Below are positions 2,247 through 33,600 of a stretch of 64,000 nt of DNA, piece after piece. Source of the DNA: Monocercomonoides exilis PA203 (lineage: Eukaryota > Protista > Preaxostyla); the NCBI GenBank assembly GCA_001643675.2, contig LSRY02000036.1, forward strand, positions 744,001 to 808,000, in the 5' to 3' direction. The stretch's first letter is position 1. The number at the start of each line of letters is the position of its first letter. A program made the position numbers and the translations under genes. The notes under the pieces were generated by a model. It ran no database searches and had not been told where the DNA came from. It saw only the letters and a program-made list of their open reading frames with translations.

Positions 2247-5200
2247 TCACATATATGGAAATCTTGCATGGCGGAAATGGTGGCTGCTTCCAAAGCCATA
2301 ACTGTCACTTTCCATTGATGCAAGCATTGAAAAGTCAAAATCATCGTTGTTGTCTGCACTGTAATCCCATGCGCTGCTTGAGCTGCTGTAAGACTCGGCT
2401 TCGCGTGGCTTCAGGCCATCTACCTTTTCCAGCGCCTGCAGATTGATGGAGCTGTAAACATCAGCGCTGATTGCCTCTCCCATGACAACATCAACATAAG
2501 AATCGCTTGACTCACAAGCGGAAGAGGATGAAGACAATGAGGAAGATGAGGAAGAGGAGGATTCCGATGATGAAGCAGTCGTCTTCGCAGAGGAAGTTCC
2601 CGAAAGAGAAGTTGAAGTTGTAGTCTCCGAAGAGCCCTGTGTCTCCATCGGAGTCAAACCAATCGGAGCTGTCGGTTTCGAATGATCCGTTTCCCCGCCA
2701 TCTCCAGTCGCCCCAGCTTCCCCACTCTGCGCCTTCACTGCCTCGTGTTGCTGACCACTCCCAATCGTCCCACGAGGCAAACAACAGTTTTTTTGCTTTG
2801 TTTCTTCATCTTCATCGTCTTTGCTGATGCTTTCGCTTCCTTCGCTCTTTATTTCATCCATCGAATTCTGTTCTGTCTGGACATCTTTCTGGATACCATC
2901 TGCCTTCTTCCTTTCTCTTGTCACACTCTCACCCTCCATTTCCTTCTCTTTCCCAGTCTCTTCTGCACCTTTCTTCTTTTCTGTCTCTTTTTCTTTCGAT
3001 CCTGTCTTATTCTTCTCTTTCTGTTTTTTCACCCATTCTGGACCGCGGACAATGGGCTCCCTGATTTTCCCTTCATTTTGTGCGTTGTCCACTTCCTCTG
3101 CAGTGAACGGCAGGCCTCTTCGTTTGTAATACAAAATGTATGCGTCCTTCGTCACCACACTGTTTTCACTAACCTCATCGACGCTATCATCGTTGTATTT
3201 CATCCACTTCTTCTTCAAGGGAGAGTATGCATACGCTGTGTAGTGCCCTCCTCCTGTCCCGCCCATGTGATTCGACACTGCAAACAGATCGTATATTGGC
3301 GGAGATGCCTTCTTTTGGGCTTCTTTTGCTGCCTCTTTGGATTTGGATGAATTGCTGTTTGAGTGGTTTTCCTCTTTATTGTCACTCTTCCCTTTCTTTC
3401 CTTTCCCGCCTTCCTTTTCTTTGCTGTCAGCTGCTGACTTCTGGTTATTCGACTGTTTTGCGAATGAATAATTCCTTTTCACACTCTCAGCTGTATCTGC
3501 AGTCATCTCCGGTGGGCACTTCTCAAATGCAGCTAAGTTCAGCCCTTTAACTGGGAAATTGACAAGCATGTCCAACTTCTGCCTCACCCCAAACTCTGCC
3601 GATGAAGAAAAGCGCTTCAGCTGGATGGTCAAAATGGAAGGCAGCTGCCAGATGTCCAGCTTCTTCCACGCCTGTTTGTGCTCCTTGCATTCGCTGCAGT
3701 ACCACGCATTCTCTTCAGACAGCTGCTCCTTCGATGTAAAGATGTTGAAGCAGTCTTCGATTGTTGTCGTCTTCTCCTTCTTCCCTTTCTTCAGCTCCTT
3801 CAGCACTGCTCGTGATGGATGCTCGTCCAGTGCCATTGCCTTGTGTGCATCCACAACATACGGCGCTGTCCACACAAGTGTCATACACTCTTCCTTTGTG
3901 ATCTTCGGAATGGCTTCCCAAATAACCTCGTTGCTCTGCGTGATCTCTTCCACTGTTGAATTGGAGCCGAAGTCTCCAACAGCCAGTCTGTACGGAAGCA
4001 GCGCACGTGGCGGAAGGGGCAGTGATTCAAGCCACTCTGCATCTGAGAGAGGAGAGGAGGATTCCGATGAGATTGAGGCTGATGCCAATGAAAATGCTTT
4101 GCTTTCGGTGGATGTTTTATTTCCTTTGTTTTCTTTGCCTTCTTTGCCTTCCTTGTTCTTCATGTGTCTGATGCATCTGTGATATTTCCCTTTCTTTGTG
4201 CTGCTCGAGAACCAAGGGCAATATTCTGTGTTGTTTGTTTTATTCTTCTCTTTCTCATCGTCAAACGAAAACTGATTCGATTCTCCGAAAAATGGCTCGC
4301 AGTAAATCCTCTTCTCTGACATTTCTGCTTCTTCTTTTTCTTTCCTCTTCCGTTCTTCTTCTTCCTTCTTCTTCTTCTTTTCTTCCTCTTTCTTTCGCTC
4401 CTCTTCCTTCTTTTTCTTTTCTTCTTCCTTCTTCTTTTGTTCCTCTTCTTCTTTCTGCTTCTTTCTTTCTGCTTCTTTCCTTTCTTCCTCCATCTTCTCC
4501 TTCTTCCTCTTCAGTGCCTCAAGATCTCCCTTTTTCTCCTTCTGCCTCTGCGCCTCCCTCAGCTCAGCCATCAGCACATCAGCCACACTCAATCTTTCCT
4601 CCATCTTCAGCTTCGTCAGCTTCTCATCCGTCACAAATTCTGCAATGTCGTTCTTCTTCTGCTCATATTCCGCATCTTCTGCCCACAACTTGTCCTCATC
4701 TGTAAATATGCTTTCCATATCCAGCTGTTTGCTCTTCTCCTTTTTGTCTTTCCCTTCCTCTTCCTCGTCTTCATCATCACAGGAGCATTCATCATCACAC
4801 TGAAGTGATACATATATTGTCATTGCCCGTTCGCTCAGCTTCTTCATCCTCTCTGCCTTCGCCTTCTTCTCCTCTGGCGTCATCCCTACGCCAAGCTCCA
4901 CACACAACGATGGCTCTTTTTCCATTAAATAATATGAATAGCTACTTGAGTATCCATCATCGTTCATCATCCCCCTCTTCTTCTTCTCCTTTTTCCACTG
5001 CTCCTCCATGTTCGTTATCTCGTTCCGAATGTCCTTCCCAAGCTTCTTCTCCAGCTTCTTCACCAGCTTCTCGTCTTTCTTTGCATACTGATCCAGATTC
5101 TTCTCTGTCTCCACCTCTTCGCTCTCCTCCATCTGCGCAATCTTCTGCCTCTCTTCGCTCTCTGCCCACTTTCTGTAAGCAGTCGGGTCAATGAGCCTCT

Positions 5201-8064
5201 TCACCCAGTGCCACACCTTCGCATGCAGATCACGGCAGCTGTCGTGGTGCAGCCGCGAAGACACCGCAAAGGGCATTCCGTGTGCAGACTCCGAAAAGGG
5301 GAAGAAGTGCGCATTCGAATCAACACTCACCTTCACACTGGACACACGAATGTTGCTTGTATCACTCTCCTTCAGCTGCTCACGTTTCAGTTCTGCTTCC
5401 TCTGCCCATGCAATCTCCTGCACAAGCATCTCCTCTTCTTCCTCCTTCCGCCTTTTCGCCCGCTCTTCTTCGGACATTCCCAACTTTTCCTCTTCTTCCT
5501 CTCTCAGCTGCTTCTTTTGTCTCATCTCTTCCTCAGCCACACTCCGCTTCTTCGCCATTTTCAGCTCTTCTGCCTGTTTTGCAGAGGTTGAGAGATAATG
5601 TCTGTCTTTGAAGTAGTTGGCAGCTGCATCCATTTCATAGACAGCCACACGCTGTGCACTCAATGTGCTGACTTCTTCGTATTTCAGCAGAATGCTCTTC
5701 ATCTTCCCCTCACACGGCGGCACAGCCACAAGACGCTCAGCAGGAATGCCCGTCAGCTTCCCCACTGCTGACAGGATGTGGCTGATTGTGCCATACTTGG
5801 GCACTTCCACTGCCATCTCCTGAACTGTCCATAGAGGATCAACAGAAGCAGAAGACGAAGATGATGAAGCAGAAGAAGCAGATGATGTATCACTTCCAGC
5901 AGACATTGGAGGAGGTGTGCTTGGCGGGGTGACATCAGCTGCTGGGCTGACTGATTCAACTGGAGAAGGGGTGGATGAACTTGATGGCTGTTCTGCCTCT
6001 TTCGCTGCTCCTTCACACAAAGCTGGCAATTCTCCAAAGGCAGTCTCTTTCACACGCTGTGAGCAGAAGCGGGGCACAAAGAAGACAGTGATTGTTGTTG
6101 TCCTTTCACCAGGCAGTGGCAGAGACAGAACTGAAAGTGGGTCGAAGCTGACTGAGCGCTTGCCGCATGTTGGGCAGTCCACTGTTGACTTCAGCTGGCC
6201 ATACAGAAGATCCACAATGGCTGAGTCGTTGCGCAGTTTGAACCGACGCTCAGCTTCGAGTGAAGATGCAACATCATCTTCAGTTGCTTCCACATTCTCT
6301 ACATATGGCTTGTCTTTGATGCGGTTCAGATCTTCGTGCTGTTGTTGATTGATGTTTGGTGTTTGAAAGGGAATATCACAAATTTATACAGCAACAGGAA
6401 ATTTCAACAACAGCCATCAACAAAAGAATTAACATTGGAAATTAGAAAATGATAATTACTTTTGAAACAGAGCAAAAAAGAAAGAAAAAAGATGTTCAAA
6501 CCAATCCATCGAGGAGGAATGTGAGGAATTCCTGTGAGTCCTGCTGGGAATACCCGCTGAACTGGTGCGAAAAATGGGACACGACGCTTTTCACTCGTCC
6601 GGGATTAACAACAGCATAATCACCGCTCCACATCGCCCTCAGCCAGGCAGCATACACTGCAGCCATCTTCCCATCACAGCCGAGCTTGTTGTTGATGTTG
6701 ATGTCCTTCACAAAGCGGAACGAGAGGAAGAAGTTCGTCAGCGGCAGTGCATGCGACAGACACTGCAGTGCAGAGTTCATATAGCATGTGTTGCCCAGGT
6801 TCTTCAGCCCTGTGTCTCCTTTTGTCGCTTTGTTCTTCTTCCCTTCTTTCTTCTGATTTCCCCACCAGTTGTTCTCGTCATTGGGATCTGCAGGCTCTTT
6901 TGGGGATTGATTGCTCTTATTGGCTTTTGAGGATGTACGAGAAGATGATGAACTAGAAGCCGAATATGTTGATGATGATGAAGATGATGCAGATGAAGAT
7001 GAAGCTGACTGTGAAGATGCAGACGCTGAATTTTCTTCATTCTCAAACCTCCTGTAATTCAAATCTTCTTCCAGCATGTGTGATTGGTCTTCTAAAGCTT
7101 GTGGTGGCACGTCTGCTTTTTTCTCTTCGATCCCGACCATTTCGTGATATCTCACAATATCTTTACTTGGGTCATAATTCGATCCTTTCGACTCAAGTTC
7201 CTTGAATGGATCATCAAATTTTTCCCCTTCTCCCATAAAACGCTTGTGCTCATCAAGCGCGGCTCCTCTAATAGCTACAATTCCCATTGGTTTTTCCTCT
7301 TCTGCAAATTTTGGTGAGTATTTCCACAATAACACGGCTTCACTGTCTGCAGATTTTGCTGGGAACACTTCAAGTAGAATAGTGTTGCTTCCGGTTCCTA
7401 GAGTTTGTTCAAGTTCTCGAAGTGTAGAAAATTTGAATGATTTTTGAGGTTCTGTTGTTGTCCAGCATTTTATTGCGTGCTTTGGCAGCAAGTTTAGTTC
7501 TGCCATAATCTTTTTATAAATATCATTCTCTTTATAATATCTGGAGATGGTGATCTCAGTAAAGCCAGCAGCAGATGTATATTTCTTTTGTTGCTCTGTC
7601 ATGTTTTCTTCTGGTGGATTTTTAAATCCGATACGAAATGTTTTTGGATCTTTTTCAAGTTGCTTCATTGTTCCAAAAAGAACAACTTCAAGTTGTATTT
7701 GAGGACCGCCTTGATAATCATCTACAATCCTGCTCCAATCGCTACTGTGAACAATTTCGAATTCTCTTTTATAAATTTTTTCTTTGAAAAATAATCATAA
7801 AATATTTTTTATTCACAAAAACAGAATTCAGATTTTTAAGAAACTTAATTTTAATATTTCAAATTTTTATATCAAACTTGGATTAAATTTTGAGCTATCA
7901 GGAATTAAAAGAGAAGAATTATCGATTGGTCCTGATGGATCTCCATCCGTGAAGCTTTTCCACCATCCAGCTTCAATAAGTGATACCATTTCGTGATTCG
8001 ACATATTACTCAATCCACTTCTATTTATAATTTCATTCTTCTCTTCTTTTGTAAGGAGAGGCAT
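2247..8064 (-). CDS. Ubiquitin carboxyl-terminal hydrolase, USP4/11/15 (Ubp12)-like with N-terminal DUSP domain; exons 8064-7878, 7781-6502, 6338-2247 (~1852 aa)
   Basis: DUSP motif WWKSF..GPIDNSSLL, Cys box GLKNLGNTCYMNSALQCL, QQDSQEFLTFLLDGL|HEDLNR joined across a GT-AG intron, Zn-ribbon CPTC...CSEC, and His box YDLFAVSNHMGGTGGGHYTAY..WMKYND. Both introns restore the frame. Confidence 0.93.
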
Positions 8065-11100: not shown

Positions 11101-11836
11101 GGGTGATTATTTATGAAATCAGATTTTTTCTGTTGAAAATTTCGGTTTGAAATTTTCACTTGAATATCAACAAAAGAACACGAAAAAAACAAAAAGGCAT
11201 AAAGAAGAAATCATCATCTTTATTAGAGTTAAAACATTTATTTTTGATACAGTTGTTGTAAATTTGGTAAATGTATATTATAGGGGAACTCGAATTTTTC
11301 AAATTTTTTATTATTAACGAATTCAATATAGTATAAGAATCATTTATTAATTAATAAGAATTTGAGATCATCTTATTTTTATGATAAAAAACAATCTGGG
11401 ATTCTTAATATTTATGGGATAGATCAATAAATGTTCTTGTTGTTTTTGAGTGCTAACCCTAAAAAGAAGAACGGGAACAAACCCTAAATTCAAGATTTGT
11501 TACGCTAACGCTAGCACCTAAACCAATCTATTAATGTTGAGATTATTTCAGAATTTAAACCCAATTTATTAAAAAAATACTGGGTCAGATCAAAATGTTT
11601 TATTTGAAAAAAAGAAATTTTGATGATTGATGATCTCAAATTTTTATTAATTAATAAATGATTCTTATTCAATATTATTTCCGTTTATAATAAAAAATTT
11701 GAATATATCGTGTTCCCCTATCATCTCCTTTTACCGTAAATTTAGCATTTAAAAACAAAAAAAAAATTCACAAAAACAAACATTTTTTGTTAAAAAAACA
11801 TCCCGAAAAAAGTCATGATTACTTTAATAATCACCC
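11101..11836. mobile_element. Non-autonomous TIR element (MITE) with GGGTGATTATT termini and ATAT flanks
   Basis: GGGTGATTATT at 11101 and AATAATCACCC ending at 11836, with imperfect extension to ~30 bp. ATAT lies on both sides. Confidence 0.7.
11283..11718. mobile_element. MITE with ~90 bp imperfect TIRs and TA TSD, nested in the previous MITE
   Basis: TA|GGGGAAC...AAGAATCATTTATTAATTAATAAGAATTTGAGATCATC is mirrored by GATGATCTCAAATTTTTATTAATTAATAAATGATTCTT...GTTCCCC|TA. Confidence 0.85.
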
Positions 11837-12314
11837 ATATTTTAATCTTTTTTTTTCATAAATGAAGACCTTGATTTTTTCTCATATCGCATAGAAATAA
11901 CAATCTCCCCACAAGTTGAAGAATTTTAATGTTTCATTACAAATGCTCAGTTTTTTATTACATGGGTTATTCTTTTTGAAAAGCAGCAAATGTTTAATTT
12001 TCAAAAAACAATAATTTTCTTGTTTTTTTTGTATTTTCATTCACACATAAGTGACTTCACTAATATGGAATCTATTATATGATAATGCTATTTCAAAGAT
12101 TCTTGAGGAAATTCGTGAATGGGAACAGAAATTTGATCAAAATATAAAATATGGGTCATTATTTTTCATATCGTAACTTTGTTCGAAGAAAGATCTTTTT
12201 TTTAAATAATTGTGGTATGAAATGAAAAGGGAAAAAACACATGTTTATAAATGAAAAGAAAAAGATCGACCTGTGCGACACGACATGCTATTTTTTATAG
12301 CTGTCGGTCACCTC

Positions 12315-12317
<3 letters not shown>

Positions 12318-12371
<54 letters not shown>
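12318..12371 (+). repeat. poly(A) tract, 54 nt
   Basis: Read directly from the sequence. Confidence 0.95.
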
Positions 12372-12373
<2 letters not shown>

Positions 12374-12789
12374 TGACAACACTTCCTTTGTTTAATAAAT
12401 TAATAAATTCGTAGTGTTTTTTTTAATAATTAATAATTAATTTTATTTTCTTTTTCATTGAGTCCAATATTTGATCTGGAAAACCATTTTTTTATTCATG
12501 GATTAATGAAACAAAAAATTTTTCGAAATTCATCGTTTATCATTTCAGTGCAAAAATGAATAGGACGAACACTAATATTTTCATGAACAATTTGAATTAC
12601 AATTTTAAGATAATTCATTCCATCCGAGCTTTTGAAAGTTCTATTTAAAATAGAGAAATTGTGTGGCTTTCTTGAATAAATTCATTCAAGAAAATGTTGA
12701 TTTCATCTTATCCAAAAGAGTTAGAGGTTTGCTATCATTGTTGCATTTGAATTCATGATGACTGTATTTATTTCTGTTCTTTGCTTTTA

Positions 12790-14172
12790 TCAAAGAGTTA
12801 TTGAATCATTGCAATTTTTCAGAACAGAGACTGCAAATAGTTGAAATTGGAGAATTGAAAGAAGTGATGAAGGAAATGTTTCGAAAATGACTGGAATCGG
12901 TTCTCACAAGAAAACAGTCAAGTGAAATCCACAGAATGATTGAAGAAAAGAAGTTATCATTGAACAGTATAACAGTGCTGTTTAAATACGTTAGATGCTA
13001 CGAAATGCTTATATTTTATGTTTTCAATGCTTTAGCAACTCACCTTTTTCCATAAGTTTTCAAAAGATAATAATAGATGAAAATTGGACAGAAAAAGTGA
13101 TCGAAATGCTTCCAAAAATGTTTTGATATGCTGCCTTTTGCTAAAAGATAGGACTCAATCAGGATTGCTTTCTGCGTGTGTGTTTTTTTTCTCTGAAAGC
13201 AACAATGATTTATGAGTGAAGAAAAGAGGAACAAAAAAACCTTGAAATAACTTTAATGGCTTTGAAAAATACTATCCGTAACATGGTGTGACCATTTTCG
13301 TTTTCTTTTTGAAAACTTTTTTGTTTCTTATTTCTGAACATAAAGTTCTAGAAGAAATAAATTAAAAGTGACTGACAAAAATTGTCCAATATTATCATGA
13401 ACATCACAATCTGTTACGTCTTTATTCTCATTCTAATTGAAAATTTTTGAAAGACAGATTTGTCAGTGAAAAAACGTTGAAGATGCAATCGAAAATGAGC
13501 GACATTTTTCGAGAGAAGCAAGACGAGTATTTGAAGAGTTGATAGGAAATGTGGATTTGAAGAATAAAGAAGAATAAAGAGGAGAAAAGTCGAATGAAGA
13601 GTTTCTTTTTTGGGATGGCTTCATGAATCGTACTGCATCTTTACCGAAACAAAATCTGGAATGAAAAATCAATCCTTCTTATCGAGGTAATTGTTCATGT
13701 ATTTCAACCAATAAAGTGGAATTATGGGAGGATTTGCAACTTGTGCATTTATTTATTGAATACAATAACAAAGAACATAGCTGTTAAAATTGAAGAATTG
13801 TTGAGATGGAGCAATTTATGCAGTATCGGAAGCGATTCAGTGGCCAACGATGATTGACAAGATGGCATATGCGATCATGAATTTTTTTTATGAATGTTTA
13901 AAGAAAATGAAAATGAAAAGAGGATGATGAAGAGGAGTTTAATGAGAGGGATGTAGAGGATGATGAAGATAAGGATGAAGATAAGGATGAACTGAATAAA
14001 GGTTAAATAGAAGAATCGAATAGTGAAAACTTGAAAATGAAGATGCTTGAAAAGATGGAAGAAAAAGGATTCAAAGATTACATCTCTGTCTTTCATGAAA
14101 CGCTTCCTTTTTTGTAAATTTTGCAATAATAGTATTTCATTTGATTTTTCAGATAAGTTCAAAAATGCGTGA
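12790..14172 (+). pseudogene. Decayed copy of a helical-repeat multigene family protein carried inside the nested element (boundaries approximate)
   Basis: Protein-like segments (HRMIEEKKLSLNSITVLFKYVRCY; NERHFSREARRVFEELIGNVDLKNKEE; KMLEKMEEKGFKDYISVFHE) are broken by stops and frameshifts. From memory they resemble a highly expanded Monocercomonoides hypothetical-protein family. Confidence 0.6.
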
Positions 14173-16528
14173 GAAATCAGTGAAACTGTATTTTTCTTTT
14201 CAAAGAATATTTCTTTCTCTTTTCTCAATCATTAATGAAAATAAAAACAATGCAATTAAGCTTTTTTGAAATCCTGGTTCATCAAATTTCAAAAAATGAA
14301 GTGAAACCTTGTTTCAAATAAAAAATTGAATATCATTTTGCGTATTCCGTCTTCTTTCTTAAGTGAACTTCTTAAAGAAATTTGTGGCTGCAATATTTTT
14401 ATATTGAAAATTCCAAATCCTTCAGGCTTTCTTTCATCGTTTCCAGATATTTCTCATTTATCCAAGGATTTTATATTTCCATGTTTTTGCAAAACACCTT
14501 CTAAAAACAATTGTTTTGTTCTATTCAGGCATTTTTGTCGATTATCTGAAAATAACTGTATTTTCAAAAAATATGAGGATGGTGAGAAAAAAAGAAATAA
14601 GACTTGCATTAGAAAATGGTTTTGAATAAGAAGAAAAAGTCGAAGCTCTCGTGAAACATTCAACAGAAAAAAAAACAATTCTGGAGAGTCGAATGATAGT
14701 TCTGTTAAAATATCAACTAACAAGCAATAATAAAAAATTCAGTCATCATACCCCTGATAAATATTGATAGATTATTATTTTATCAATTTCATAAGATGAT
14801 CCACATGTTTATGTAGAAATTCAGCAATTACTGTTCAGCTCGCAAGATATACTTGTGCGGCTTGTTGTCTTTGAGTAAAAAGGATAAATTCATCTGACAG
14901 AGCAACTGTATTTTCTATTCTCATCACCAAATATTCAAATACTTCTCATTAAGGCATTTAAATGCCTTGTAACTTCGATTTTTACAAAAAACTTAGCATA
15001 TCAATTATTTTGTGAAAAATAGTGATGAGCACTTAAATTCTTCGATGCATTTTTCCGCATGAACTAAATTGTTTAATTTTTCCAAGTGATAAATACACAC
15101 TCCTTGTTGTAATTTTAAAAATTGAGTTAAACAAACAAAAAAATAAGAAATCGTAATATCAACAAATATGAACGTTTTCAAACGGTAATCAAAAAAAACA
15201 GTCTTTGAATGTACATTCTTCAGATCCTTTTTTAATTTGTATTTGTTTCTTTCACTGAAAAATGAAAGTTTAATAAATATTAAAAGAAAAGTTATGGCAA
15301 TAACTCACAAAAAAGTGAAATCAGTAATATTTCAAAAGCAAAGAATGTTATTTTTAATTCCTGTTCAATTTTCCAACTCATTCATTTCATTGACAAAATT
15401 ATTATCCAGTGACAGAAGTGGCTTCCAGTGGCTTTTTAAATTCCTTTGTTCACTGATCATGTCACAAAACCATTTTTCTCTTTATTCGAATTTTAAAATT
15501 TTTTTGATAGAATTTTCGAAAAAATTAATTTTTTTTTTTCAAAAAAGTTGTAATAATATGAAAAGAAAGACATTGTTTAAGGTTTTCTTTAAAAGAAATC
15601 CAAAATATGAGATATGAAAATTATTTATGGTACTGATCAGAAGAAAATGTCCTGTCGGTCATCTTTGTCACTAAGTGGCAAAATTTGCCACTTGTCGCAC
15701 AGGTCTAGAAAAAGATTCTTGATTGATTTTTTGAAAACTGAGTTAATTTGAGAAAAATTTGAAAATTCCATTATAACATTAATTAATTATGCTGTTTTTA
15801 ATATATGAATTATTTGATATCAAAACATCAAACAAGCTCAATCATCACTTGTAAAACATTACGATTTGAGTATGATTTAATCCTATTTCTTTTTTCAAAG
15901 CTTCGATTAACTAATCATTTGTATTTAAATTTATAATTGATTAATAAAATTTAGATACGAATTTGCAATATTTCATGTTTTCTTTGACATATTTTTTAAA
16001 AGATGTTTCGTTTCATTAACGAAGTATTTTGGTTAAGGAGATATGAGAAGAAAAGGAGAAGCAGTTTTTTATGAAATATATATTTGTAATATTTGGAGCT
16101 AAATGAGAGGATAAGATTTAGAAAGATGTGGAATATATATAAACTTGACATTTTTTCTATTCATTAATTTTTGAAAAAATAGTTTAGAGAATGTTATTGA
16201 TAATTAAGCCTTCTATAAATTTTTCATTATTATTTCTTATTTCTTCATTTTAAACATTGGACTTTTATTTGTTTGTTGAAAAGTTTATAGTTAGTGAAAT
16301 ATTTTCGACAATAACATGATGTTTTAATGCATTTATCACTATTTTTGAAAGATCTTTATGTATTTGATAAATTTGATAGAAGAACTCATGAAACAAAACA
16401 CATAAATGTGATGCCTTAATAAACATATAATTAACTTTTGCAATTACAATTTCTCTATAACTATTTTTTTTTAGAACATGTGAAATGAAGAAAAAAAGAT
16501 AAAACCAACAAAAATGTGAAGAAAAATA

Positions 16529-18541
16529 GGGTCATATTTTTATTAGATCCTATTTTTTTTATTCGATCCTATTTTTTTGAAATCAATTATTCAGCCACCC
16601 ACATTTCGATTTATTAATAGTATTTTTGGTATATAAGAAAAATATCAGCAACTGAATAAATACATTTAAATGCATAACCTGTTTCTTGTGGGGGGGAAAT
16701 GGGGGGGTTAAAAGCCTCCCGTTGAAATTCTATCAGTTACAGGTTGGTTCCAATGAATTAAATACAAAAAAATATGCATTTAATGTACAAAAAATTAAAT
16801 TTCAATGAAAATGGATATTAATAATTATTATATAAATAAATTGGCTTAATGATCATAACCCAAAAAATTAAAAATGAGAAATGAAGTTGCAAGGAAATCA
16901 ACTGCGGGTCAGCTGAAGCTGTGGGAGGGAATGCTGTCCCTCAAATACAGACAATTTCGGAATCCACTGGAGCGAATGGCGCACATAGTTAACGATGGAG
17001 CTGTGCGTATGGTGGACGCATACAACAGCAAAAAATTCAGCAAAATCCGAATCAAGCGTGCGGTGAAGGCTGTTCGGCAAGGAAGGCTAGTATCAAAAAT
17101 TGGAAGACCTGCTGTGGTCATTGGAGAAAAAGAGCAAACAGTGCTGGATGAAATAAAAATAGAATCACTGTCTGGAGCAAGCTTAACAATCAAGAAAATG
17201 CGTGAACTGGTTTGTATAAATATTCTTTGAAATGTATTAATTAATATTAATTAGATTGAAAATGTTGTTAATGATTTGAAACCAGAAAACACGCCAGATG
17301 TTAAAGTTTCTGCGTCAGTTGCCTACGATTTCATCAAACGACATCCAGAGCTGAAGACATCAAAGCCAAAAATTGTTGATGCGAACAGGCTTGCCGTATC
17401 ATGCCAACAAGTTCTAAAGCCCTGGTATGATATGCTCAACGGATTACATCAGAACAACAGTTACAACAACGCACTGATTTTCAACGTGGATGAGTCTTCA
17501 CTCAGGGTTCCCGACAGCTCCAATCGGAATGTCGTTCATCCGGCAAATACAAAACCCGGTTACGCTAAATCTGCTGCGCGAATGGCGAATTCTACACTGA
17601 TTGCGGCGGTCGCAGCAGATGGACAATCACTTCCTTCAGTGATCCTGTGGCCGAGTCTCAAACTTCCTGATGACTTGAAGCCTCTTCAGTCTACAAATCT
17701 TGAGATTTGGCCGAACAAATGCGGATGGATGGAATCTTCAACATTTAGGAAGTATGCACTTACAATTCTTCTCACTTCAATCAAAGAAAGAAGGCAACGC
17801 ATGTCACTCGACGAATCGCACTGCTTGCTTCTAATCGACTCCCACATTTCTCGAGCAGATCCAACAATCTGGCGAGAGTTCAAAAAAGAGAATGTAGATG
17901 TTGTGACATTCGTCCCTCACAGCACACACATCTGCCAGCCACTGGACAGAGGTGTATTTGCAGTTCTGAAGTCAGAAATGAGTTCACAGTACGAAGCACC
18001 TTCGTCGTCGTCTTCAGCAGCGAAAAGAATAGCTCTTGTGGAAGCTCTTCAACAATCAATTCATTCGGCGCTATCACCTTCGGTCATCAAAAGAGCATTC
18101 AAATGCAGCGGCGTGCTGAAAGACTCGTCTGGGCCAGTTCTGATGAAGCTTCCTCAATCATCGACTTATCCTCTTCCTTCTCATAAAAATCGATTTGACT
18201 TCTACGGTAAAGAAATAACAGAAGAAAAGGTGCTAAATGAGTGGGATGATTATTTGAAAAAGAAAAGCGAAATGGAAAATGAAAAAGAAAACATTTCTGA
18301 TGAAGAAAATGATGAAACAATGAATTTCACGAAAAAGCTGAAAAGAAAATTCAAAATACTTCAAGATGAGAACGATATAGAGAAAGAATCATCTGATGAA
18401 ATTGAAAGAGGAAAGGGAAAAAGAAAAGTCATACGCAAATTAGATTCGAGTTTTGTATTTTTTTGAATTTTTTTTAGAATTTTTCATTTCGAAAAATTTG
18501 GGTACTAATAAAAAAAATGGGTACTAATAAAAATATGACCC
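16529..18541 (+). mobile_element. Autonomous pogo/Fot1-like (Tc1/mariner superfamily) transposon, 2013 bp, TA TSD
   Basis: TA|GGGTCATATTTTTATTAG ... CTAATAAAAATATGACCC|TA, with subterminal repeats, enclosing a transposase gene. Confidence 0.93.
16874..18466 (+). CDS. pogo-family DDE_1 transposase (DD35D); exons 16874-17209 and 17255-18466 (~515 aa)
   Basis: N-terminal HTH-like region with GRP, catalytic motifs IFNVDES, LLLIDSH and PHSTHICQPLDRGVF, with 35 residues between the second and third Asp. A 45-nt GTTTGT..AG intron joins the two ORFs in frame. Confidence 0.92.
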
Positions 18542-18640
18542 TATATGAAATATACGAAAGTCAAACAGAAAGTTTCATATTTATAAGTTTCATTTAATTC
18601 ACAAACATAAGGCAAAATTCTTGCTCCAACGCATCACGAT

Positions 18641-18900
18641 TCAGACACTTAGAAAATTGTCGAGATAAAGTCCTCCTTCTGCATTGTCTGCTTTGCAATT
18701 CTGGAATTCACTATCACTGATCCTTACACACGCTGAAATCGCAAAGATGAGCATTCCACCTCCACTATAGCTTTGTGCAGCGCATGAGTCGAAGGTGTTG
18801 TTCACAATCTCAACCGATTTGATATTGAAACAATTAATTCCTCGACCAGCATAGCATGCATAGCAGTTGTTGAACGAGCTGTTTTTGATGGATTTGTGGA
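18641..18900 (-). pseudogene. Isolated fragment of a beta-helix membrane-protein family gene inside the large transposon
   Basis: NSSFNNCYA...NNTFDSCAAQSYSGGGMLI...DSEFQNCKADNAEGGLYL has the same F..C.A...GGG repeat style as the intact family genes, but no start, TM helix or continuation. Confidence 0.65.
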
Positions 18901-20718
18901 GATGTTGAAGAAGATCAGCTGTGTGTGCACCATAAAGTGTGTCAAGGGTGTTGTCAGAAATGGGGTTAATGAAACACAAAAAGATGAGAAATCCAACTCA
19001 CTCACCAATACACTTCCTCCTCCTTCACTTTCTTCTCCTCTTCCTCCACCTCGTTGTCCTCCTCTCTCTCCTCCTTCATCTCTTCAATCCAATATTTCTT
19101 ATAACCCCAAAAATCTTACAACACCTTTCCTTCCTCTTTCTGCTACACATAAAAGAAATCTTATCAAAAAATATTAAAAATCCTCCTCTTCTAATGCTGT
19201 TCAGTTTCAATAATTCTGTGAAGCTCTTTCCCAAACTGATTTCTCTTATTGACCTTCACTTTCTATCGTCTGATGCAATTTCACTCCCTTGAAGTTTCAC
19301 GAAAACGCCCGCAAATACAATTTTGTTCAAACAAATAAAAAGAAAAAACAATAAATCATATAAAAAATAGATCAAATAATACAACAAAAAAAAATATCAT
19401 ACCTTCGTTTTCCTTTTCTCTCGCTCACTTTGTCAAAGAATCGCCGCACTCATTGTCCTCTTCATTGCTTCTATCATCTCCAACAAAAACAAAATGTGCT
19501 ATTATCTCCATTCTCAAAGATTATCCTTTCAATGAATATTGTGGGGGATGTTCTCATCTTCTTTTTTAAAACTTTCCCACAAATTTTCATCTAAAACTTC
19601 TTCCCTTTCATCTTTCTCCTCTTTTTATTCCTTTTCTCTTGATTCATCTCCTCATCTCCTCATCTCTTCATCTCATTCCTTCCAATTCACATCCCCATTC
19701 CCTGCCATATTTCCTCTCTCCAAATTCAAAAACATTCCATCTCTTCTTCGACCCATCCAAAACCATCAATGCACTCCCCCTTTTTCGCCCTTCTTCTCCC
19801 AAAGCTTCATCAAATAAAAAGTCCTTTCATTCCATTTGCTCGCAATTTGGCTAAACTTCAACCGCAGCTGCAGAGGCTTGAACATTATTTTTCTGCTGGA
19901 AAAAAACAGACAGTGAGTGCATTTCTACGTTTTCCTGCTCCTAATCGAAAAGCGAAGAATCGTTGTTTTAATCTTCTTTTTAATGATTCACTGGCTGCAC
20001 TGTATCTGCTGAAGCTGAACATTTGAAAAACAAACCAAAGAAGAAGAAGACGAAGAAGAAGATGATGATGATGTGGAAGAAAAAATAGAAGAAATAGAAG
20101 AAAGATATACATGGAATTATGTTGCTATTTCGATAAATAGGGAGAAGTTCGTGATGAAGATGATAAGAAAGACAGCAATCACGATAATTAGAATGGAAAA
20201 GGAGAGGAAGAATAGGAATGAAGAATAGGAACAAATTTCTGCAATTGTCAATGTTAAAGACGATGCAACATACAAGTGAGATGCAAAGTGGAGTGGCACA
20301 TGGGGAACAAAAGCTAATTGAACAGGGCATCTGGAGAGAGGAGCAAAGCCCAAATGAAAAAGAAGAAAAAAAAAACACGAAGATGAAAACAACAAATTCA
20401 ATGAAGAAGAAGAAGATAATAATAATAATAATAATGTTGATGTTGATGTTAATGACAACGGCTATTGAATCGTCCGAATGGAGCAGCATGCGAATGGGGA
20501 TGCTGCTTGCTCTGAAACGGAAGTGCCGTTGGATCACTTGGACAAGCAGCGTTGGCAATCCGTCTGCGGCAATGCCAACCGCTGCCGATGCCAATGCCGA
20601 TCCCCGACAAGGCGACGCCAGCTATGGCACAGGCGCAAGCGAACAAGTCGTTCGTCGAGAATATATCTTCCTCAACAAATGGCAACAGCAATAGCAATGC
20701 AATGAGAAAGAGAAAGAT

Positions 20719-20814
20719 GAAGAAGAAGAAGAAGAAGAAGAAGAAGAAGAAGAAGAAGAAGAAGAAGAAGAAGAAGAAGAAGAAGAAGAAGAAGAAGAAG
20801 AAGAAGAAGAAGAA
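20719..20814 (+). repeat. (GAA)32 microsatellite
   Basis: Read directly from the sequence. Confidence 0.95.
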
Positions 20815-22045
20815 GAGGAAATTAATGGAGAAGAATTTAATTAAGAAGAAGATAAAAGCATCAACTACGTAATGGCATCGCCTGTTTTCTCTCTTCTGGA
20901 TTAAGTCCGAGTGCTTCGCAGCTCCTCCATGCCTTTGCCACCATCATTCCAAAGCTTCTCCTTTCCATCGCTCTCTCACATAACCCATTCATCCTTTTCC
21001 CCTCTTCGCTCCTCTTCCTTTAGCGGCAAGGCCTCGCAGCATCTATTAGAGTGTCTTCATCATTTTTCTACGTGTCCACTTCCGCTTTGCCTCCTTCTCC
21101 ATTTCTAATTCAACATTCCCTCTTCATCTCCATCACTTTCTTTCCCCATTTAACCCTCAAAAAGCTTTCAACCACAGCAACTTCCATTTCCTCCTCACAT
21201 TTCTGCTTTCCATTTCTTGATAGATGCTAACAATACAAACTAATTAACAAATCAACAAACAAACAAATAAATAAATAAATATGAGACAAACATATAATTG
21301 TTAATTTCCACCACAAATTTTCTCCTTTATTGACATTCTTCAGATTAATGATGTCATTTCAATCAGAATATACTTTTGCTTTAAATTCTCATAACATTTC
21401 CTATTCAACATTTGTAATTTTTCCTTAATTTCTCATATCTCCTTAACCAAAATACTTCGTTAATGAAACGAAACATCTTTTAAAAAATATGTCAAAGAAA
21501 ACATGAAATATTGCAAATTCGTATCTAAATTTTATTAATCAATTATAAATTTAAATACAAATGATTAGTTAATCGAAGCTTTGAAAAAAGAAATAGGATT
21601 AAATCATACTCAAATCGTAATGTTTTACAAGTGATGATTGAGCTTGTTTGATGTTTTGATATCAAATAATTCATATATTAAAAACAGCATAATTAATTAA
21701 TGTTATAATGGAATTTTCAAATTTTTCTCAAATTAACTCAGTTTTCAAAAAATCAATCAAGAATCTTTTTCTTTTCATTTATAAACATGTGTTTTTTCCC
21801 TTTTCATTTCATACCACAATTATTTAAAAAAAGATCTTTCTTCGAACAAAGTTACGATATGAAAAATAATGACCCATATTGTTTTATTTGAAAATTGAAC
21901 GTTTGCGACTTTTCATATAGAATTAACAATATTTGAAATATTTATCTGTCGTTTCAAAACCCAAAATATGATTAGAAAAAATTGAAGAGGCATCACAAAA
22001 TAGATATTTCACATTTCAGGGTTCATTAATGAATATTCATAACTA

Positions 22046-22421
22046 CAGATATCGCACAAAATACCGGACATTGCACAAAATACCGGACAAGATCGAATTC
22101 ACAATAACTGTAAGAGGAATAATTCTGACAATTTTCCTCAAAATATATCTCAATGATACAAACTCAATTGATATCCAAAACTTTCAAAATAGTTTCATTT
22201 GTGCTCAGAAAAAATATATATTGAAATTTCGGGGAAACTCAAAAACCTATTTCTCCGAGATTTCGATAAATATTTTTCTGAGCTCAAGCGAAGCTGTTCT
22301 GAAAGTCTTGCATGTCAAATGAGTTTGCATTGATGAGATATATTTTGAGCGAAATTATCAAAAATTTTCTTCTTTCGGTTATTGTGAAATCGATCTTGTT
22401 CGGTATTCTGTGCGATATCTG
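22046..22421. mobile_element. Tc1/mariner-type MITE with CAG termini and TA TSD
   Basis: TA|CAGATATCGCACAAAATACCGGAC...AAGATCGAATTCACAATAAC is mirrored by GTTATTGTGAAATCGATCTTGTTCGGTATTCTGTGCGATATCTG|TA. Confidence 0.85.
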
Positions 22422-25400
22422 TATAATTCAAGCCAAAAAATTTGACAGAAGAAATATAACTTCAATAATCATCATCGTTATATTAAATAATATTTTATAA
22501 AAAAAGAAGTTGTGAAATTTGTCTATCCATTGTTTTTTGATGAATACGAAGTTTAAAACGTAATATGAATGGACTTTTTTATTGGAGTGCTAAATATCTT
22601 TTTCAATGTTTTGAATTAAGCCTGGTTGACGGATTGAAAAATTGATGGTTACGTCAGTCAGTGGAATATTTTCACGTCAATTGGCTTTTTTTCTCTCTAT
22701 CTTGATATTTGAGGCAATAAACACAAATTTTATTGCTTAAAAATGTATGGTTATTTTTTGAAATAATTAATTATGTATTATTTTTTCCTCAAAAGAAAGA
22801 AAATATTATGAACCATAATTCTAATAATATTTATTCTGAGAAATATCTTTTTGCAATTGAACGCTTGAAGTCAATGATAGCTGATTGGTTTGCATATTGT
22901 TGTATTTGCCTATAATCTGTAAATGTTCTTCTTTCAGGGAATCCAGTGGAAATTTACGAAAATAAACAAAAAGTGGAATATCTTATTAATCTGCATGAAT
23001 ATCGAGTTTATTCTACAAATTCATAAAGAAAGTTCACAGGATGAAGAAAATTGGAAGTGAAAACTGAGAATCAGATGATGAAACACTTGAAAATCGAAGG
23101 CATAACGAATTTTATTATAAAGGAAAACAAGCATTGACTTGGGAATAATAAACAGAAAATTGCTTTAAAAAATGCTTTGAAGGTTTGATGTAGTTATTTT
23201 TTTCGAGTGATTATTATTTTTCATTCAGGATGCTGAAAGATAGAAGGAATGGATGGCTTTGAAGAAGAACAAGATAAGCTAGGAAGGAAAAAAAAGACGG
23301 ACACATGAAATGCTAGATATTTCGAAGATTCATTGAATCGGGCTTTGACGAAGAATTCGTTTTTGAGGAAAGATGTTTTTTTTTTTGTGAAAGAGGGGAA
23401 GCGAATATGGAAGAGATGAAATGAAAAAGGGATCGCTCAATCTTTCGTATTTTTTGTTGGAAAGAAAGAAAGTGGATTGAGCTGAATGTTTGATGGATTT
23501 GGAGGATATTATTTGCCAGAAGAAAAAGGGACAGAAGAAAAGAATTTCAATGTATTTTTTTGTTGATGTTAATTGACTCTCATCTTCTCAATCTTCAACA
23601 AATAATCATCTCATTCAACACATTCATCATCATCATTGTCTTCTGGATCTTCTTTAAATATATCATCAACATTTCACACAAATTCTTCTTCTTCTTCTTC
23701 TTCTTCTGCTTCTTTTGCTAATTTGACATGTCTGTTTTCAATTGAGTTAAGGAATAATCTCCGGAATAAATCGAACGGGCCCTAACGATGGAATTTATTT
23801 TTTGTGATTTTTTTTTTGAATTATTTAAAGAAGAAGAAGAAGAAGGAAGAGGAGAACAAGGAAAAGAAGAAGAACATGAAGCTGGTTGAGAGCTAGCCAC
23901 CAACTGCGGAATGTGCTTTACAGAGCGGGAAAAAGAGAAATGCAACCAGGGAGACTCAAACGAGATAGGAAGAACTTTGTTTATGCCACATGACTCAGAG
24001 AACAGCTTTGAATCTCTTTCAACCACCTTCGGTGTTCTGCAGCTTGTTATTTAAACATGGAACAATGAATGACTTTTATGCTTATGTGAGTGTCTGCCTC
24101 ATTGCTACTTGCACAATCTTCACAATCCTTTCAAATAGCAAATGAATGTTCGACCTCTTCTTCTCCTTCTCATTTTCATTCTTTCTCCGCATCGTCCATC
24201 CCAGCTTCCACTTCTCCGCTTCAATTTCCATTATTCATTCTCTCTCTCAGATGAATGTGCTCAAACGGATTAAAACCACTACAGAAGACAAGTGCACAAA
24301 GGTTAAAAAGCAACAGGAAAGTGACAAACTGAAGAATTGTGTGGAGAAAATAACAAATATGAAGAAGAATACGAAGAGGAAATGAAGAAGAAGGAGAAGA
24401 AGAGGTGGTTGATTGTGGGAAGGCATCAGGAAAGAGATGGAAATGAGCACAAGGCGAGCCAACAACCGACGAATAAGATGAAGAAGCCAATGGAGATATG
24501 GAATTATAATTGGAGAGAGAAGGCGACAGATCTGAAATAGCAGGAGAAGAGAAAGAAGAAGACGTACAAAAGTGCGAAGAGGCAGAGAAAAGAGGATTAG
24601 ATCCATTATAATTCATGTTTTTGAACAATCTCATTTATTGGAGTGGAAGCATTGAAGAAGAGAGAAGAGGCACTGCTTGACAGATCAGAGCTGCATTCAG
24701 CGAGTGTATCGCGGCCGATCCAAAAGGCAGCTGAAACGCACCGCCTTGGAATTCGACTGATGAATTGAGAAGAAACGAAGAAAAGGAAAAAGATGAAGAA
24801 GACTATGACAATGATGGAGATGACGATTTATCGCTTGAGTCATTGTGTTGTTTCATTCCTTCTTTTTCTCCATCACTTCCTTCTTCATCTGTTGTAGTGC
24901 TTTCATCCGTTCCAATGGGAATGATGTCTGATGTGATGAGTGCTGCCCTCAAAAGCGGCAGGTCGTCTCTGCCGAGGTAGAAGCAGTCGTCGATGGCGAA
25001 CAGCATGGCATCTTTTAGCTGATTGTCAGAAACAAGATGGATGACTGGCTGTGGGATGAGGGAAAACATAGCAACGATCGGTTGAGTGGGTGTGGGAAAG
25101 GACAATAGCTCCGTTGGGGGAGAATGAAGTTAAAAAGAAGAAGATGGCGAAGAAGGAAAAGAAGCTGCAATAGAAGAGGAAATATCAGTGAAGCGTTAAA
25201 ATAAAATTGAAAAATCAGCAAGCAATAATGGAATTCAGAAGGCATAGAGAGATGCACAAAGCTGTTGAAAATACAGAATTCATGACAAAGAAGATATGTT
25301 GAAAGCTATTAAAGCACTTCGAACTTTATCATAGAAAAGAAGTGAGATTTTATTGAAAAGAGCAAGAAACGCAACACATATTCTCCTTCTCGTTAACTTC

Positions 25401-30429: not shown

Positions 30430-30670
30430 TAGTCAAGTCTTTCACAAAAATATGAAAGTTACGATCCAATACAGACCATAAAGTAAGGGTACTTACCTTT
30501 ATTTGATTTTCAATTATTGATTCCATAAATAATTGCGAAAATCATCTCTCTCTATCATAACTTTTTCGTATTGAATTATAAAGAGTTATTTGAATAATAT
30601 GAAATTCGGCAACCCATGATAATAATTATTATATTTTATTTTATTGTGTAGCAGCCTTTAAAAGAGTGGA

Positions 30671-33600
30671 ATGAGATGTTGCGTTATAAAATATTTTTTA
30701 GTATTATATTTGCATAATGCAATTAACATGGCATTGCTTGTTAATCAACCTTTCACTTCACACACTTCATCTTGTTCCGATGGTGCTACCACGTCTCTTT
30801 TTACGAAATTTCAAAACACATTATCATTAACTTGTTCACCTACTGTTTTTTATTTCGATAAGCATCAAATCCGTTTGCAAAACACTTCATTGAAATTACA
30901 GAACATAAACATTTTATCTGAATCATTTCACCATCTTCTTAGTGTTGATTGGAGTTCACTTCTTTGTTTGAGCGACATTAGTTTTTCTATGCAAACAACT
31001 TTACATTGCCATTTGATAACTTATTCTGGAGAGGTTGATGCATTCAATCTTTCCCTTTCTTTTCCACATTCTTTATCTTCATTATCTTCTTCTATTTTCC
31101 ATTCTGCCCATCAAAACTCAGGGTTCAAGATAACTTTGACAACTCTTTTTTCTTTAAAATTTTGTGAAGATGCTTATTCTTCCCTTTTTTGTATTGGAAG
31201 AGGAAAATATCAATTAATCGATAAATGCTTGTTTTGCAACATATCTCAAATAAAGAAAAATTTTCATCAACATCCACAAGATTACAATTCTTTTAATATG
31301 TTATTTTGCTCTCGTTCTAAGTTTGTTTCAGTTAGGGGATTCTTACACGGGCTGTATGATGCTAATAACACACCAAAATCTTTTTTTTCGACAAATTCTT
31401 CTTTTTTGAAATGCCAACAAGAAAATTCATTTAATACAGAATATAAGACCCAACAGTATTTAGTTGAAACATCAACATTTGAAGACGACGAATTTTCTCT
31501 TTGTTATGCATCTGAAAAGAGTCAAAGTGTGAGTGGAGGAGGGATTGCTTTCTGTGGAAATTCGTCTTCTGATCTTACCATCCAAAGATGCACATTTACA
31601 CAGTGTACAGCAACTGGGTGGGGTGGTGGTGTTTTTGTGAAATGTTGTGGTGAAGTAATTATTAATTCGACTTACTTTTTCAGTTGTAATTCACAAAAGT
31701 GCGAAGGAGGAGGATTGTTCTGCAAAGGTGCGACAGACAAATTAACAGTGGAAGACTGCACATTTGGAGTCTGCTCTGGGTACAGAGCGGGAGGCGGCTG
31801 CGCAATAATTTTTGATGAAAAACAAGAAATAGATTCTTTAATCGTTCTTGTAACAGGAACCCGCTTTAGGGATTCTATTTCGAAAAAACTTGATTCACAA
31901 TTCGAAGAGAATTCATTTGAATCGCATGCAAACACTTTGACAACCAAAATGCTCTCATCTTCCTTTCACAGCACTTCATCTGCTTCTCTCATCCCTTCTG
32001 TTTCACCGAGTGATTATCATTCTATCAACGAGTTCACACCATGCGATGGAGAAGGCTCAGGCTTGTTTATTCAATTCGATGTTTCGCATTCGTTGCTGTA
32101 TTCAATCAAAGAATGCATCTTTCTTGGCTGTTCAGCGTCCGCACATGGTGCCGCTTCGCTTTTTATTCCCGACAAGATTGAATTGTCCGTATTGGGATTC
32201 TGCGTATTTACTGGGAACGAGCGTGGAGATGGGATTGCATCCGATGTTGCGTTTCATGCACCTTCTGATGATGTTGTTTGCCCCATCACTTATTGCTTCA
32301 CTTTGTCGAAGAAAGATAATGTTGCGCTGTGTCTGCCGGCAGACGCCTCGTACTCCTTCAGCAGGGAAGCCTGTGAGCTGAAGGACGAGTGGCTGCCGGT
32401 GGGAAGCCTGACGCGGGCAGTCAATGCAGAAATCGGGTCGGACAAGAACTTCTTGTGCGGTATGAACGGCAACCGCCCCTGCGCCTCGCTGTCGTATGTG
32501 CTGAGCTCTGTGGTGGATGGCTCGCTGCATTGGATAGCCACAATCGGAGCCAGCTCTTATTTGAACGAAGGTGTTGACGGAATCATTTATGACATCATGA
32601 TCGATGTGCTTGGAGAAGATAAGCGGTCGACAATCTTTGATATAAGAGACATGAAGAACTGTGGAGATGAGGCGGTGTACGAACTGGTTAATTCAACTGT
32701 TTCTTTGTCTTCGGTGTCTGTCCTGATGCGTCCTGAAAAGGCGATCGAGTTTGTTATGGCTGATGGGTGTCAGATTGCAATCGAGTACTGTCTGTTCAAT
32801 GCAGGCAGCACTCAGAAGATGTACCCGCTCCACACACAGTTCTTCATTTTTGTGGACTCAAAGTTTTCGTTCTCCTATTGCGAAATAAACTACATCAGGA
32901 TGGCAGCTATGCCTTTCCTTTCAATTGTGGAAGAGGTTTGGATATGATGCATTTTCTTTGATTTCATTTTCCATTTAATGATTTCTTTCCTTTAATTTGT
33001 GTTTATTAAATTTTATTTGCTATTCTGACAATACAAATGTATTTTTAACGTTGATTTTTGATGAATTCTTATTATTTGATTTTCTTATCTTTTATTTTTA
33101 ACCTTTTAATTTTGTTGTGTTTCTGTTTGCATATTTCAGGTTGGGTCTTCACATGAATTTTCTTTTTTCAATTGCAACATGACAAATTGCTCAGCAAGAA
33201 ACTCAAATTCTCCCTTGCTATTATATAAAGTGACACAAACACCAGCACCTACACACAGAAGGAGACAATCACAAATGCAGAAGAGCAGCTCTTTCATTCG
33301 GGAATCCTTTTCTGATCTGTCTGTGCTGGTGATCAACTCCAGCAGCTTCAGCGACATCACCAACGACATCCACGAGAAGGGGGGTCTGCTAAACACGATG
33401 ATCTCGCGGACGCACGAAGTCTTTGTGAGCAGCAGCACTTTCACGTCGTGTGTGGCATCGATGCAGTCAGCCAAAGGCGGAGTTGCATACTTTGACTGCT
33501 CAAATGGAACAGGAGTGAACAACTGGAAGCTGTCCAATGTAGTGTTCAGAAACAATGCAGCAGCCTTTGGCAGAGATTTGTTTTTGATTGTGCCAAACAT

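Follow-up and report, generated by a model that had tools for sequence, protein, structure and literature searches.

The window analyzed here is a 64,000-nucleotide (nt) stretch of the genome of the gut protist Monocercomonoides exilis PA203 (contig LSRY02000036.1, positions 744,001 to 808,000), in which positions 12153 to 21875 are occupied by a 9,723-bp transposable element whose inverted arms of ~457 bp are 99 to 100% alike. Features within and beside it are collected in Table 1; the source assembly (82.3 Mb in 101 contigs) was searched for related copies, which are labeled L0nn, on contigs labeled Cnn. An inverted-repeat search of the part of the window between 10 and 24 kb returned positions 15707-16060 paired with 21419-21772 (354 nt, 99%) and positions 12197-12266 paired with 21763-21832 (70 nt, 100%). 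Once positions 12267-15706 are taken out, the left arm (12153-12266 joined to 15717-16060) pairs with the right arm (21419-21875), and the two differ by one mismatch and one 1-nt indel in a run of T. The termini read GGGTCATTATTTTT from position 12153 and GACCC up to position 21875, with ATAT outside both, and the tip common to the element's family, GGGTCATTATTTTTCATATCG, reads inward from 12153 and, on the opposite strand, from 21875.

Two further elements are nested within this outer element. Element A, in the left arm, is flanked by a 10-bp duplication (agaaaaagat, at 12257-12266 and 15707-15716), ends in 13-nt terminal inverted repeats (TIRs), GACCTGTGCGACA, and contains a run of 54 adenines (12318-12371). 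A short-read contig joins 12256 to 15707 with 10 shared letters, the form found in the intact right arm, and the initial annotation was right to take that arm as the empty site of an element that had inserted later. The genome holds three full-length copies of element A, the other two being 93% identical to it (7% diverged), and its right ~480 bp are common to a larger family (545 candidates). Its 10-bp target site duplication (TSD) and 13-nt TIR recall Mutator-like elements (MULEs), which have TIRs and TSDs of 9 to 11 bp; the open reading frames (ORFs) of element A gave no Pfam match, and a search for autonomous relatives was not made.

Element B combines a DDE_1 transposase, short TIRs, and a TA duplication, all of which characterize pogo elements. 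Its 396-amino-acid (aa) ORF (17276-18466) matches DDE_1 (PF03184, E = 7.5e-15), and at all 10 pogo ends inspected, which are those of element B and four sister copies, TA stands directly against GGG. Another ORF (16874-17230) precedes the first in the same frame, and a 45-nt GT...AG stretch between them (17210-17254) holds the only stop; judging from sequence alone, this stretch is probably a short intron, whose removal would yield a pogo transposase of ~515 aa. In sister copies of element B, which are 99% identical, the open frame is likewise 403 codons long, and there are 1,222 candidate pogo loci in the genome. Because the sisters of element A are 93% identical and those of element B 99% identical, the insertion of A was probably not recent and that of B probably was.

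The only transposase ORF within the outer element belongs to element B, and the outer element therefore lacks a transposase of its own; an ORF and Pfam search of its backbone likewise found no transposase ORF, as had been claimed when the element was annotated as mobile and nonautonomous. Without both nested elements and their duplications, the backbone comes to 9,723 - 3,450 - 2,015 = 4,258 bp, and the nested structure described in that annotation, with its ~4.3 kb left after the insertions are removed, was accurate to the base. A microsatellite, (AAG)~36, lies at 20714-20820.

Table 1. Features of the outer element and its immediate flanks (window positions)
Feature	Position	Strand	Basis
Left 4-bp target duplication, ATAT	12149-12152		Identical flanking 4-mers in 10/14 copies and 4 more ATAT pairs
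Left arm, outer 114 bp, begins GGGTCATTATTTTTCATATCG	12153-12266	+	100% complementary to 21763-21875 except for one T-run indel
Nested element A, 3,440 bp, nonautonomous	12267-15706	+	TIR GACCTGTGCGACA, 10-bp TSD
Left arm, inner 344 bp	15717-16060	+	99% complementary to 21419-21762
Family-specific subterminal DNA	16061-16526		16219-16525 aligns with L036 1116-1420 and with L034, 75%
Nested element B, 2,013 bp, pogo type	16529-18541	+	TIR GGGTCATATTTTTATTAG, TA TSD at 16527-16528 / 18542-18543
Decayed beta-helix-like (Pmp-like) gene-family fragment	18653-19143	-	tblastn, E = 2e-10 and 5e-21
Upstream region of captured gene, family backbone	19144-20065	-	Common to other copies and host gene loci
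Copy-specific 650-bp piece	20066-20715		Missing from 14 other copies; GAA-rich repeats at its bounds
Family-specific subterminal DNA, including (AAG)~36	20716-21418		73 to 80% with nearly all family members
Right arm, 457 bp, uninterrupted (empty site of element A)	21419-21875	-	Inverted-repeat search
Right 4-bp target duplication, ATAT	21876-21879		Flank comparison
Foldback MITE adjoining the element	22044-22425		Uninterrupted paralogue of the L036 insertion site

Searching the genome with the right arm, a check proposed in the initial annotation, gave 41 matches, most of them paired in -/+ orientation at distances of 2.2 to 10.7 kb; the arms occur for the most part as correctly oriented pairs with duplications and not as solo repeats. 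The 21-nt tip has 64 hits in the genome, compared with 0 for its reversed control, a number well beyond what chance would give. At least 20 paired copies of 2.2 to 10.7 kb share this tip, and the family numbers about 20 to 30 copies with a reference form of ~5 kb. The comparisons below include 14 other complete copies and the window copy (15 in all), and each of the 14 others begins and ends with the family tip.

Family members target A-NN-T sites (ATAT, ATTT, and AGTT), and their insertion duplicates a net 4 bp. Of 14 informative copies, the window copy among them, 10 have identical 4-mers on both sides, and when the comparison is shifted by 4 to 20 bases, 0 to 1 of 14 match. Because ATAT is its own reverse complement, the decisive cases are the nonpalindromic duplications, ATTT in three copies and AGTT in one, which are direct repeats. 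A pattern search that included the flanks added four further ATAT/ATAT pairs. Two restorable empty sites show the mobility of the family directly. Copy L032 splits a pogo-type ORF, and removal of the element together with exactly 4 bp restores a 253-aa in-frame match with no stops (E = 1.6e-115); cutting out 0, 2, or 3 bp breaks the frame and distributes the match over two frames. Copy L036 splits a foldback miniature inverted-repeat transposable element (MITE), and joining its flanks with 4 bp taken out gives a sequence that aligns, with no gaps, to the MITE at 22044-22425 of the window; with the 4 bp left in, a 4-nt gap appears at the junction. The 10 copies, the four additional pairs, and the two empty sites all fit a 4-bp, AT-rich duplication of the AWWT type. 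The element is a real nonautonomous TIR element, which represents a new family of a known kind and is fairly ordinary in a transposon-rich genome.

It is extremely unlikely, given that at least 20 unlinked loci have these termini and 4-bp duplications and that two insertions have restorable empty sites, that the structure is no transposon but a local inverted duplication or an artifact of nanopore assembly. Such an origin could draw on the richness of this genome in true palindromes and on the failure of short-read contigs to span the locus. Contigs assembled from short reads of the same strain nevertheless reproduce the local sequence and contradict no part of the structure. The points at which they break or diverge (12149-12153 and 16522-16528) coincide exactly with repeat ends, where this is to be expected, and one of the contigs (484 nt) crosses the inner arm boundary at 16060 with 0 differences.

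Besides the family itself, a 14-nt version of the tip (85 genome hits, compared with 0 for the control) bounds five +/- pairs of 12.9 to 18.0 kb. A genome search with Pfam UCH placed a UCH/USP open frame in three of these five pairs (916, 919, and 576 aa), in each case 3.46 kb from one tip, and in three of the five, both tips are bordered by ATAT. These same-tip elements of 13 to 18 kb would be the likeliest mobilizers of the family in trans and are its candidate partner. If the link to the USP elements holds, the family, whose tips and 4-bp signature are defined, would serve as a compact substrate for tests of an unusual transposase. More widely, a search for ATAT and then GGGT-N-ATTATTTTT, in which at most 3 mismatches were allowed, gave 4,663 matches in the genome and 124 for the control, and the genome matches include many inverted pairs ~250 bp apart (MITEs), mostly with GGGTGATT tips. 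The ATAT-flanked tip marks a dominant transposon group of the M. exilis genome.

Other partners were considered and set aside. A retroviral-type integrase or Maverick-like partner is unlikely, since a genome search with Pfam rve gave a single weak hit in 82 Mb. The M. exilis genome paper lists 1.4 Mb of long terminal repeat (LTR) elements (PMC8767320); these may be very decayed, of the DIRS type, or missed by this search. Elements with a D5-like helicase were also rejected as partners, 0 of ~80 hits lying within the large same-tip elements. One element of this kind is nested in a 10-kb family copy (L043:2173-5501, with L044, G000:C36); it has 669-bp arms that are 99.6% identical and encloses an intact ORF of 597 aa whose domains are DUF5906/VapE-like (D5-type primase-helicase), and related sequences occur at ~80 places in the genome, some as identical inverted pairs.

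Resemblance at the tip also extends to pogo, and the family might be a nonautonomous relative of these Tc1/mariner-type elements, with tips TGGGTC...GACCCA, a 2-bp and mostly TA duplication, and movement by a pogo transposase. The nested pogo element starts with GGGTCATATTTTT, which, if one gap is allowed, agrees with the family tip at 13 of its first 14 letters; many of the candidate pogo loci have intact ORFs; and the inner dinucleotide is TA in 7 of 11 informative copies. In three copies, however, the inner dinucleotides are TT/TT and in one they are GT/GT, and Tc1/mariner-pogo elements insert at TA. At the 10 pogo ends no T intervenes between TA and GGG, whereas in the family TA does not abut the tips as it does in pogo and the net duplication is 4 bp. 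Comparison of the arms with pogo ends and with host gene loci found no similarity beyond the tip. None of the pairs with the 21-nt tip has its own pogo ORF; where pogo sequences occur in or beside family copies, they are nested or neighboring, and the combination of tip and ATAT flank is common to the 13- to 18-kb elements with USP ORFs. We regard a pogo origin as unlikely. One candidate for an autonomous pogo version was examined and rejected: the ORF in the family copy at C7:1555822-1561992 sits where a nested insertion in the arm would have placed it, and the arm is matched only up to 236 bp from the tip.

Most of the internal DNA of the window copy is common to the family. Positions 16219-16525, 18880-20065, and 20716-21370 align at 72 to 88% with other copies, and in the right internal part (2.9 kb), about 2.2 kb is homologous to and collinear with family members, as is the left internal part; L034 and L036 align in one unbroken order from end to end (5 kb, 81 to 88%). 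Positions 18882-19587 and 19573-20065 have counterparts in L037 and L032 (74 to 88%) and also in gene loci on C42, C71, and C80, and 1.8 to 2.9 kb of the family backbone is 84 to 90% identical to host gene loci. Across copies, this cargo comprises ~0.7 to 1.8 kb of upstream DNA and residues 1 to ~390 of a 720-residue protein, and the C-terminal half of the host gene is in none of the copies compared. In at least five copies the gene is truncated at the same point (residues 375 to 394) and joined to family-specific DNA in the same way. Because the collinear internal DNA and the capture junction are common to copies, they indicate a single ancestral capture, which would have taken up ~390 codons from the start of a beta-helix-like gene together with the DNA upstream of them.

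The debris in the element thus derives, as first annotated, from an expanded host gene family, which has at least 1,635 candidate loci, intact members of 600 to 750 aa, and giant members with open frames of 2,000 to 4,500 aa. Two apparently intact members lie elsewhere in the window (30662-32944 and 55450-62163, with open frames of 761 aa and 2,238 aa). The beta-helix label given to the family is plausible in the form of Pmp-like beta-helix repeats: its neighbors in a language-model comparison are the Chlam_PMP, DUF1565, and Beta_helix clusters (at 0.95), and its alignment consensus contains repeated C.A...GGG(I/M/L) / F..(N/K)C units. Profile searches add nothing to the label, with no Pfam hit at an E value of ≤0.1 and a blank result from the PDB, and an AF2 (AlphaFold2) model has a mean pLDDT (predicted local distance difference test score) of 37 and is all-beta only in residues 283 to 480.

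The cargo of the window copy covers residues ~85 to 176 and ~296 to 375 of a 720-aa intact member, the middle being deleted. Its amino acid identity to the intact gene is 55 to 58%, compared with 65 to 89% for nearly all fragments in other copies, making it the most decayed among the copies compared by tblastn. The piece at 20066-20715 (~650 bp), whose right-hand GAA-rich repeat is the (AAG)~36 microsatellite, is missing from all 14 other copies and is the only copy-specific acquisition; its relatives occur only at C53:236724-237494 (84%) and in an inverted pair at C80:1538778 / 1547748 (80%).

Within a copy, the two arms are 98.5 to 100% identical in 13 of 14 copies; between copies, arms are 70.6 to 96.8% identical, with a median of 78.8% (~21% divergence). 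Because arms are alike within nearly every copy yet differ by ~21% between copies, their near identity gives no age, a clear and checkable caution against dating long-TIR elements of the M. exilis genome by how alike their arms are. The window copy itself combines heavily decayed cargo with arms that differ at two positions. The inner arm boundary is sharp, and its position varies among copies from 340 to 930 bp. Since cut-and-paste DDE/DDD enzymes do not resynthesize ends, the pattern requires that each element's arms be copied from one another, and we infer from it that intra-element gene conversion, and not recent insertion, keeps the arms alike. The sole copy with unlike arms, L041 (G000:C17:1040365-1044448; 79%), has ATTT at both ends; its left arm is nearest to L040 (93%) and its right arm to L037 (81%), and it is either a chimera or a copy that escaped homogenization.

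These data bear on the reading offered in the initial annotation, that of a young Pack-type element that had recently captured several host fragments and was actively shuffling pieces of gene families. The TIRs and TSD, the lack of a transposase, and an interior derived from a host gene are indeed those of a nonautonomous Pack-type element; the 650-bp piece is unique to the window copy among the 15 compared, the tree of 8 cargo fragments and 6 host genes is an unresolved star that does not force a single origin, and the arms are 99 to 100% alike. The supposed youth of the element is, however, already largely refuted by the ~21% divergence among copies whose own arms are alike, by a cargo that is internally deleted and more decayed than any other, and by the 7% divergence of the sisters of element A. 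Nor is the interior a patchwork captured by this copy, since most of it and the capture junction belong to the whole family, leaving only 20066-20715 as specific. Active shuffling is not supported either. The main cargo is common to the copies, none of which was found with a different, unrelated host gene in that role. As a whole, the reading of a young, recently capturing element is, on this evidence, improbable.

A different explanation of the arms is that they are regenerated at each transposition, one templating the other through a panhandle or hairpin, in which case their identity would date the last move. The contrast between identity within copies and divergence between them does resemble that of LTR pairs, and most copies retain undamaged TSDs. 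However, replication genes are absent from the family and its surroundings, the integrase search of the whole genome gave its one weak hit, and the failure of cut-and-paste enzymes to rebuild ends applies here as well. Identity moreover spills into the flanks by 2.97 kb in L037 and by ~25 bp in L039, where the flanking bases are mirrored, which fits local recombination and not transposition. Together with the similar arms of nonmobile gene palindromes in the same genome, this makes regeneration very unlikely. DIRS-like or LTR-like causes of arm identity were also dropped, there being no reverse transcriptase or recombinase, TSDs being present, and the ends being like those of DNA transposons.

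Copy L037 (G000:C80:1133500-1150200, with L049/L050) stands at the center of an 11.7-kb palindrome, in which a mirror identity of 99.7% runs beyond both tips. Most of one D5-like helicase gene (residues 102 to 597) is present in both flanks as mirror images, and the flanking 4-mers, ATTT and AAAT, are inverted, with no direct TSD. The mirrored helicase flanks and inverted 4-mers indicate that one original flank was replaced by a mirror copy of the other, and the extension of identity past the termini that copying across arms does occur. L037 and L039 are thus two concrete cases of arm-to-arm copying that spills into flanks. Homogenized arms are not special to the family, because palindromes of the cargo gene family are alike too: in L047 (G000:C42:140500-150499), arms of more than 4.7 kb with intact members are 97.3% identical, and in L051 (G000:C71:58000-67999), 4.3-kb arms with intact members are 99.6% identical across a 140-bp spacer. 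At least eight further inverted pairs of cargo-family genes have identical scores.

The center of the 10-kb palindrome in L047 is occupied by a related 1.2-kb foldback (4627-5843) with GGGTGATTGTTTTT (GGGTGATT) tips. It is possible, though we hold it only tentatively, that long arms are active recombination substrates whose copying sometimes overruns into neighboring DNA and makes new palindromes around transposons. Were this true in general, TIR transposons would seed the gene-bearing palindromes of the genome's largest gene family. The published account of the M. exilis genome makes no mention of inverted repeats or palindromes (PMC8767320).

The outer element is most probably an old, nonautonomous cut-and-paste DNA transposon, a Sola2-type dependent with ancestral cargo, whose arms have been kept alike and which later received two insertions. 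A founder would have captured the host upstream region and first ~390 codons once, and the copies would have inherited that fragment while being moved in trans by the 13- to 18-kb elements encoding a USP-domain protein of ~916 aa. After insertion, the window copy would have lost part of its cargo and gained the 650-bp piece at a GAA-rich repeat; element A, with its 10-bp TSD, would then have entered the left arm, followed recently by pogo element B, giving the three-layer nest. Throughout, the two arms would recombine with each other, maintaining near identity through intra-element gene conversion.

Several observations weigh against this account. The large elements are not matched by the 21-nt tip with up to 2 mismatches, their likeness to the family amounting to ~14 nt and the flank, and the Sola2 assignment is based on the TSD type and this 14-nt tip, with the partner enzyme known as a USP-domain frame. 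The flanking 4-mers are always A...T, and a 2-bp duplication beside T...A tips would give the same sequences. A single cargo clade is weakly disfavored in the cargo tree (approximately unbiased test, P = 0.04), and the cargo may have been exchanged with host genes later on or replaced repeatedly. Gene conversion is deduced from the pattern of arm identities, and element A has been neither copied into nor removed from an arm. Finally, none of the short-read contigs spans the whole structure.

About 46% of the M. exilis assembly consists of repeats, and 35% is "unclassified" (PMC8767320). The family shows how part of this repeat fraction arises, as stacked transposons with dead pieces of the largest gene family. 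Next to the outer element, the 11.0- to 12.5-kb part of the window (22 to 24% G+C) is a transposon pile-up: a 470-bp foldback MITE with GGGGAAC tips (11266-11735) adjoins the right end of an element with an GGGTGATTATT tip (11804-11844), after which comes ATAT. On the other side, the MITE at 22044-22425 has 147-nt arms (81%); such a MITE lies within 170 bp of 4 of the 15 family copies, reflecting either a common target preference or transposon pile-up.

Several known systems share features with the family. The Sola superfamily was reportedly described by Bao et al. in 2009. Dictyostelid Sola2 elements (DFa and PPa) are 10 to 15 kb long, with TIRs of 12 to 22 bp and 4-bp AWWT TSDs (ATAT, AAAT, and ATTT) (PMC3627910). 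The family resembles them in its TIRs and AT-rich TSDs of the AWWT type, in its large presumed autonomous partners (13 to 18 kb here, compared with 10 to 15 kb), and in the occurrence of derivatives with the transposase region deleted alongside complete elements. Unlike the published elements, with their short TIRs, it has arms of ~450 bp that are identical within each copy, it contains no transposase itself, and its tip, GGGTCATT, is unlike the dictyostelid tips printed in the supplement to PMC3627910.

Plant Pack-MULE and Pack-TYPE elements are likewise nonautonomous, bounded by TSDs, and present in tens of copies, and they too carry promoter-proximal DNA and the 5' half of a gene. Pack-MULEs belong to another superfamily and are found in another kingdom, and they represent many different captures, whereas the family described here shares one ancestral capture, has much longer arms, and has fragments mostly broken by stops and deletions. 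Galileo, a Drosophila element of the P superfamily (PMC3573991), is similar in its very long TIRs of variable length among copies, its mostly nonautonomous copies, and its occasional chimeras with unlike arms, of which L041 would be the counterpart. The arms of our family differ in lacking tandem subrepeats and in not being derived from the partner's sequence, and the TSD is 4 bp rather than 7 bp. The copies are not foldback elements in the strict sense, having no tandem array in either arm and a unique center of 1.3 to 9 kb. Mammalian sex-chromosome palindromes and plastid inverted repeats differ from the family, whose arms belong to a mobile element, measure only ~0.45 kb, and enclose 1.3 to 9 kb of unique DNA, and whose conversion is here deduced from comparing sequences. 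They are alike in that the arms of one unit evolve in concert while the units themselves diverge.

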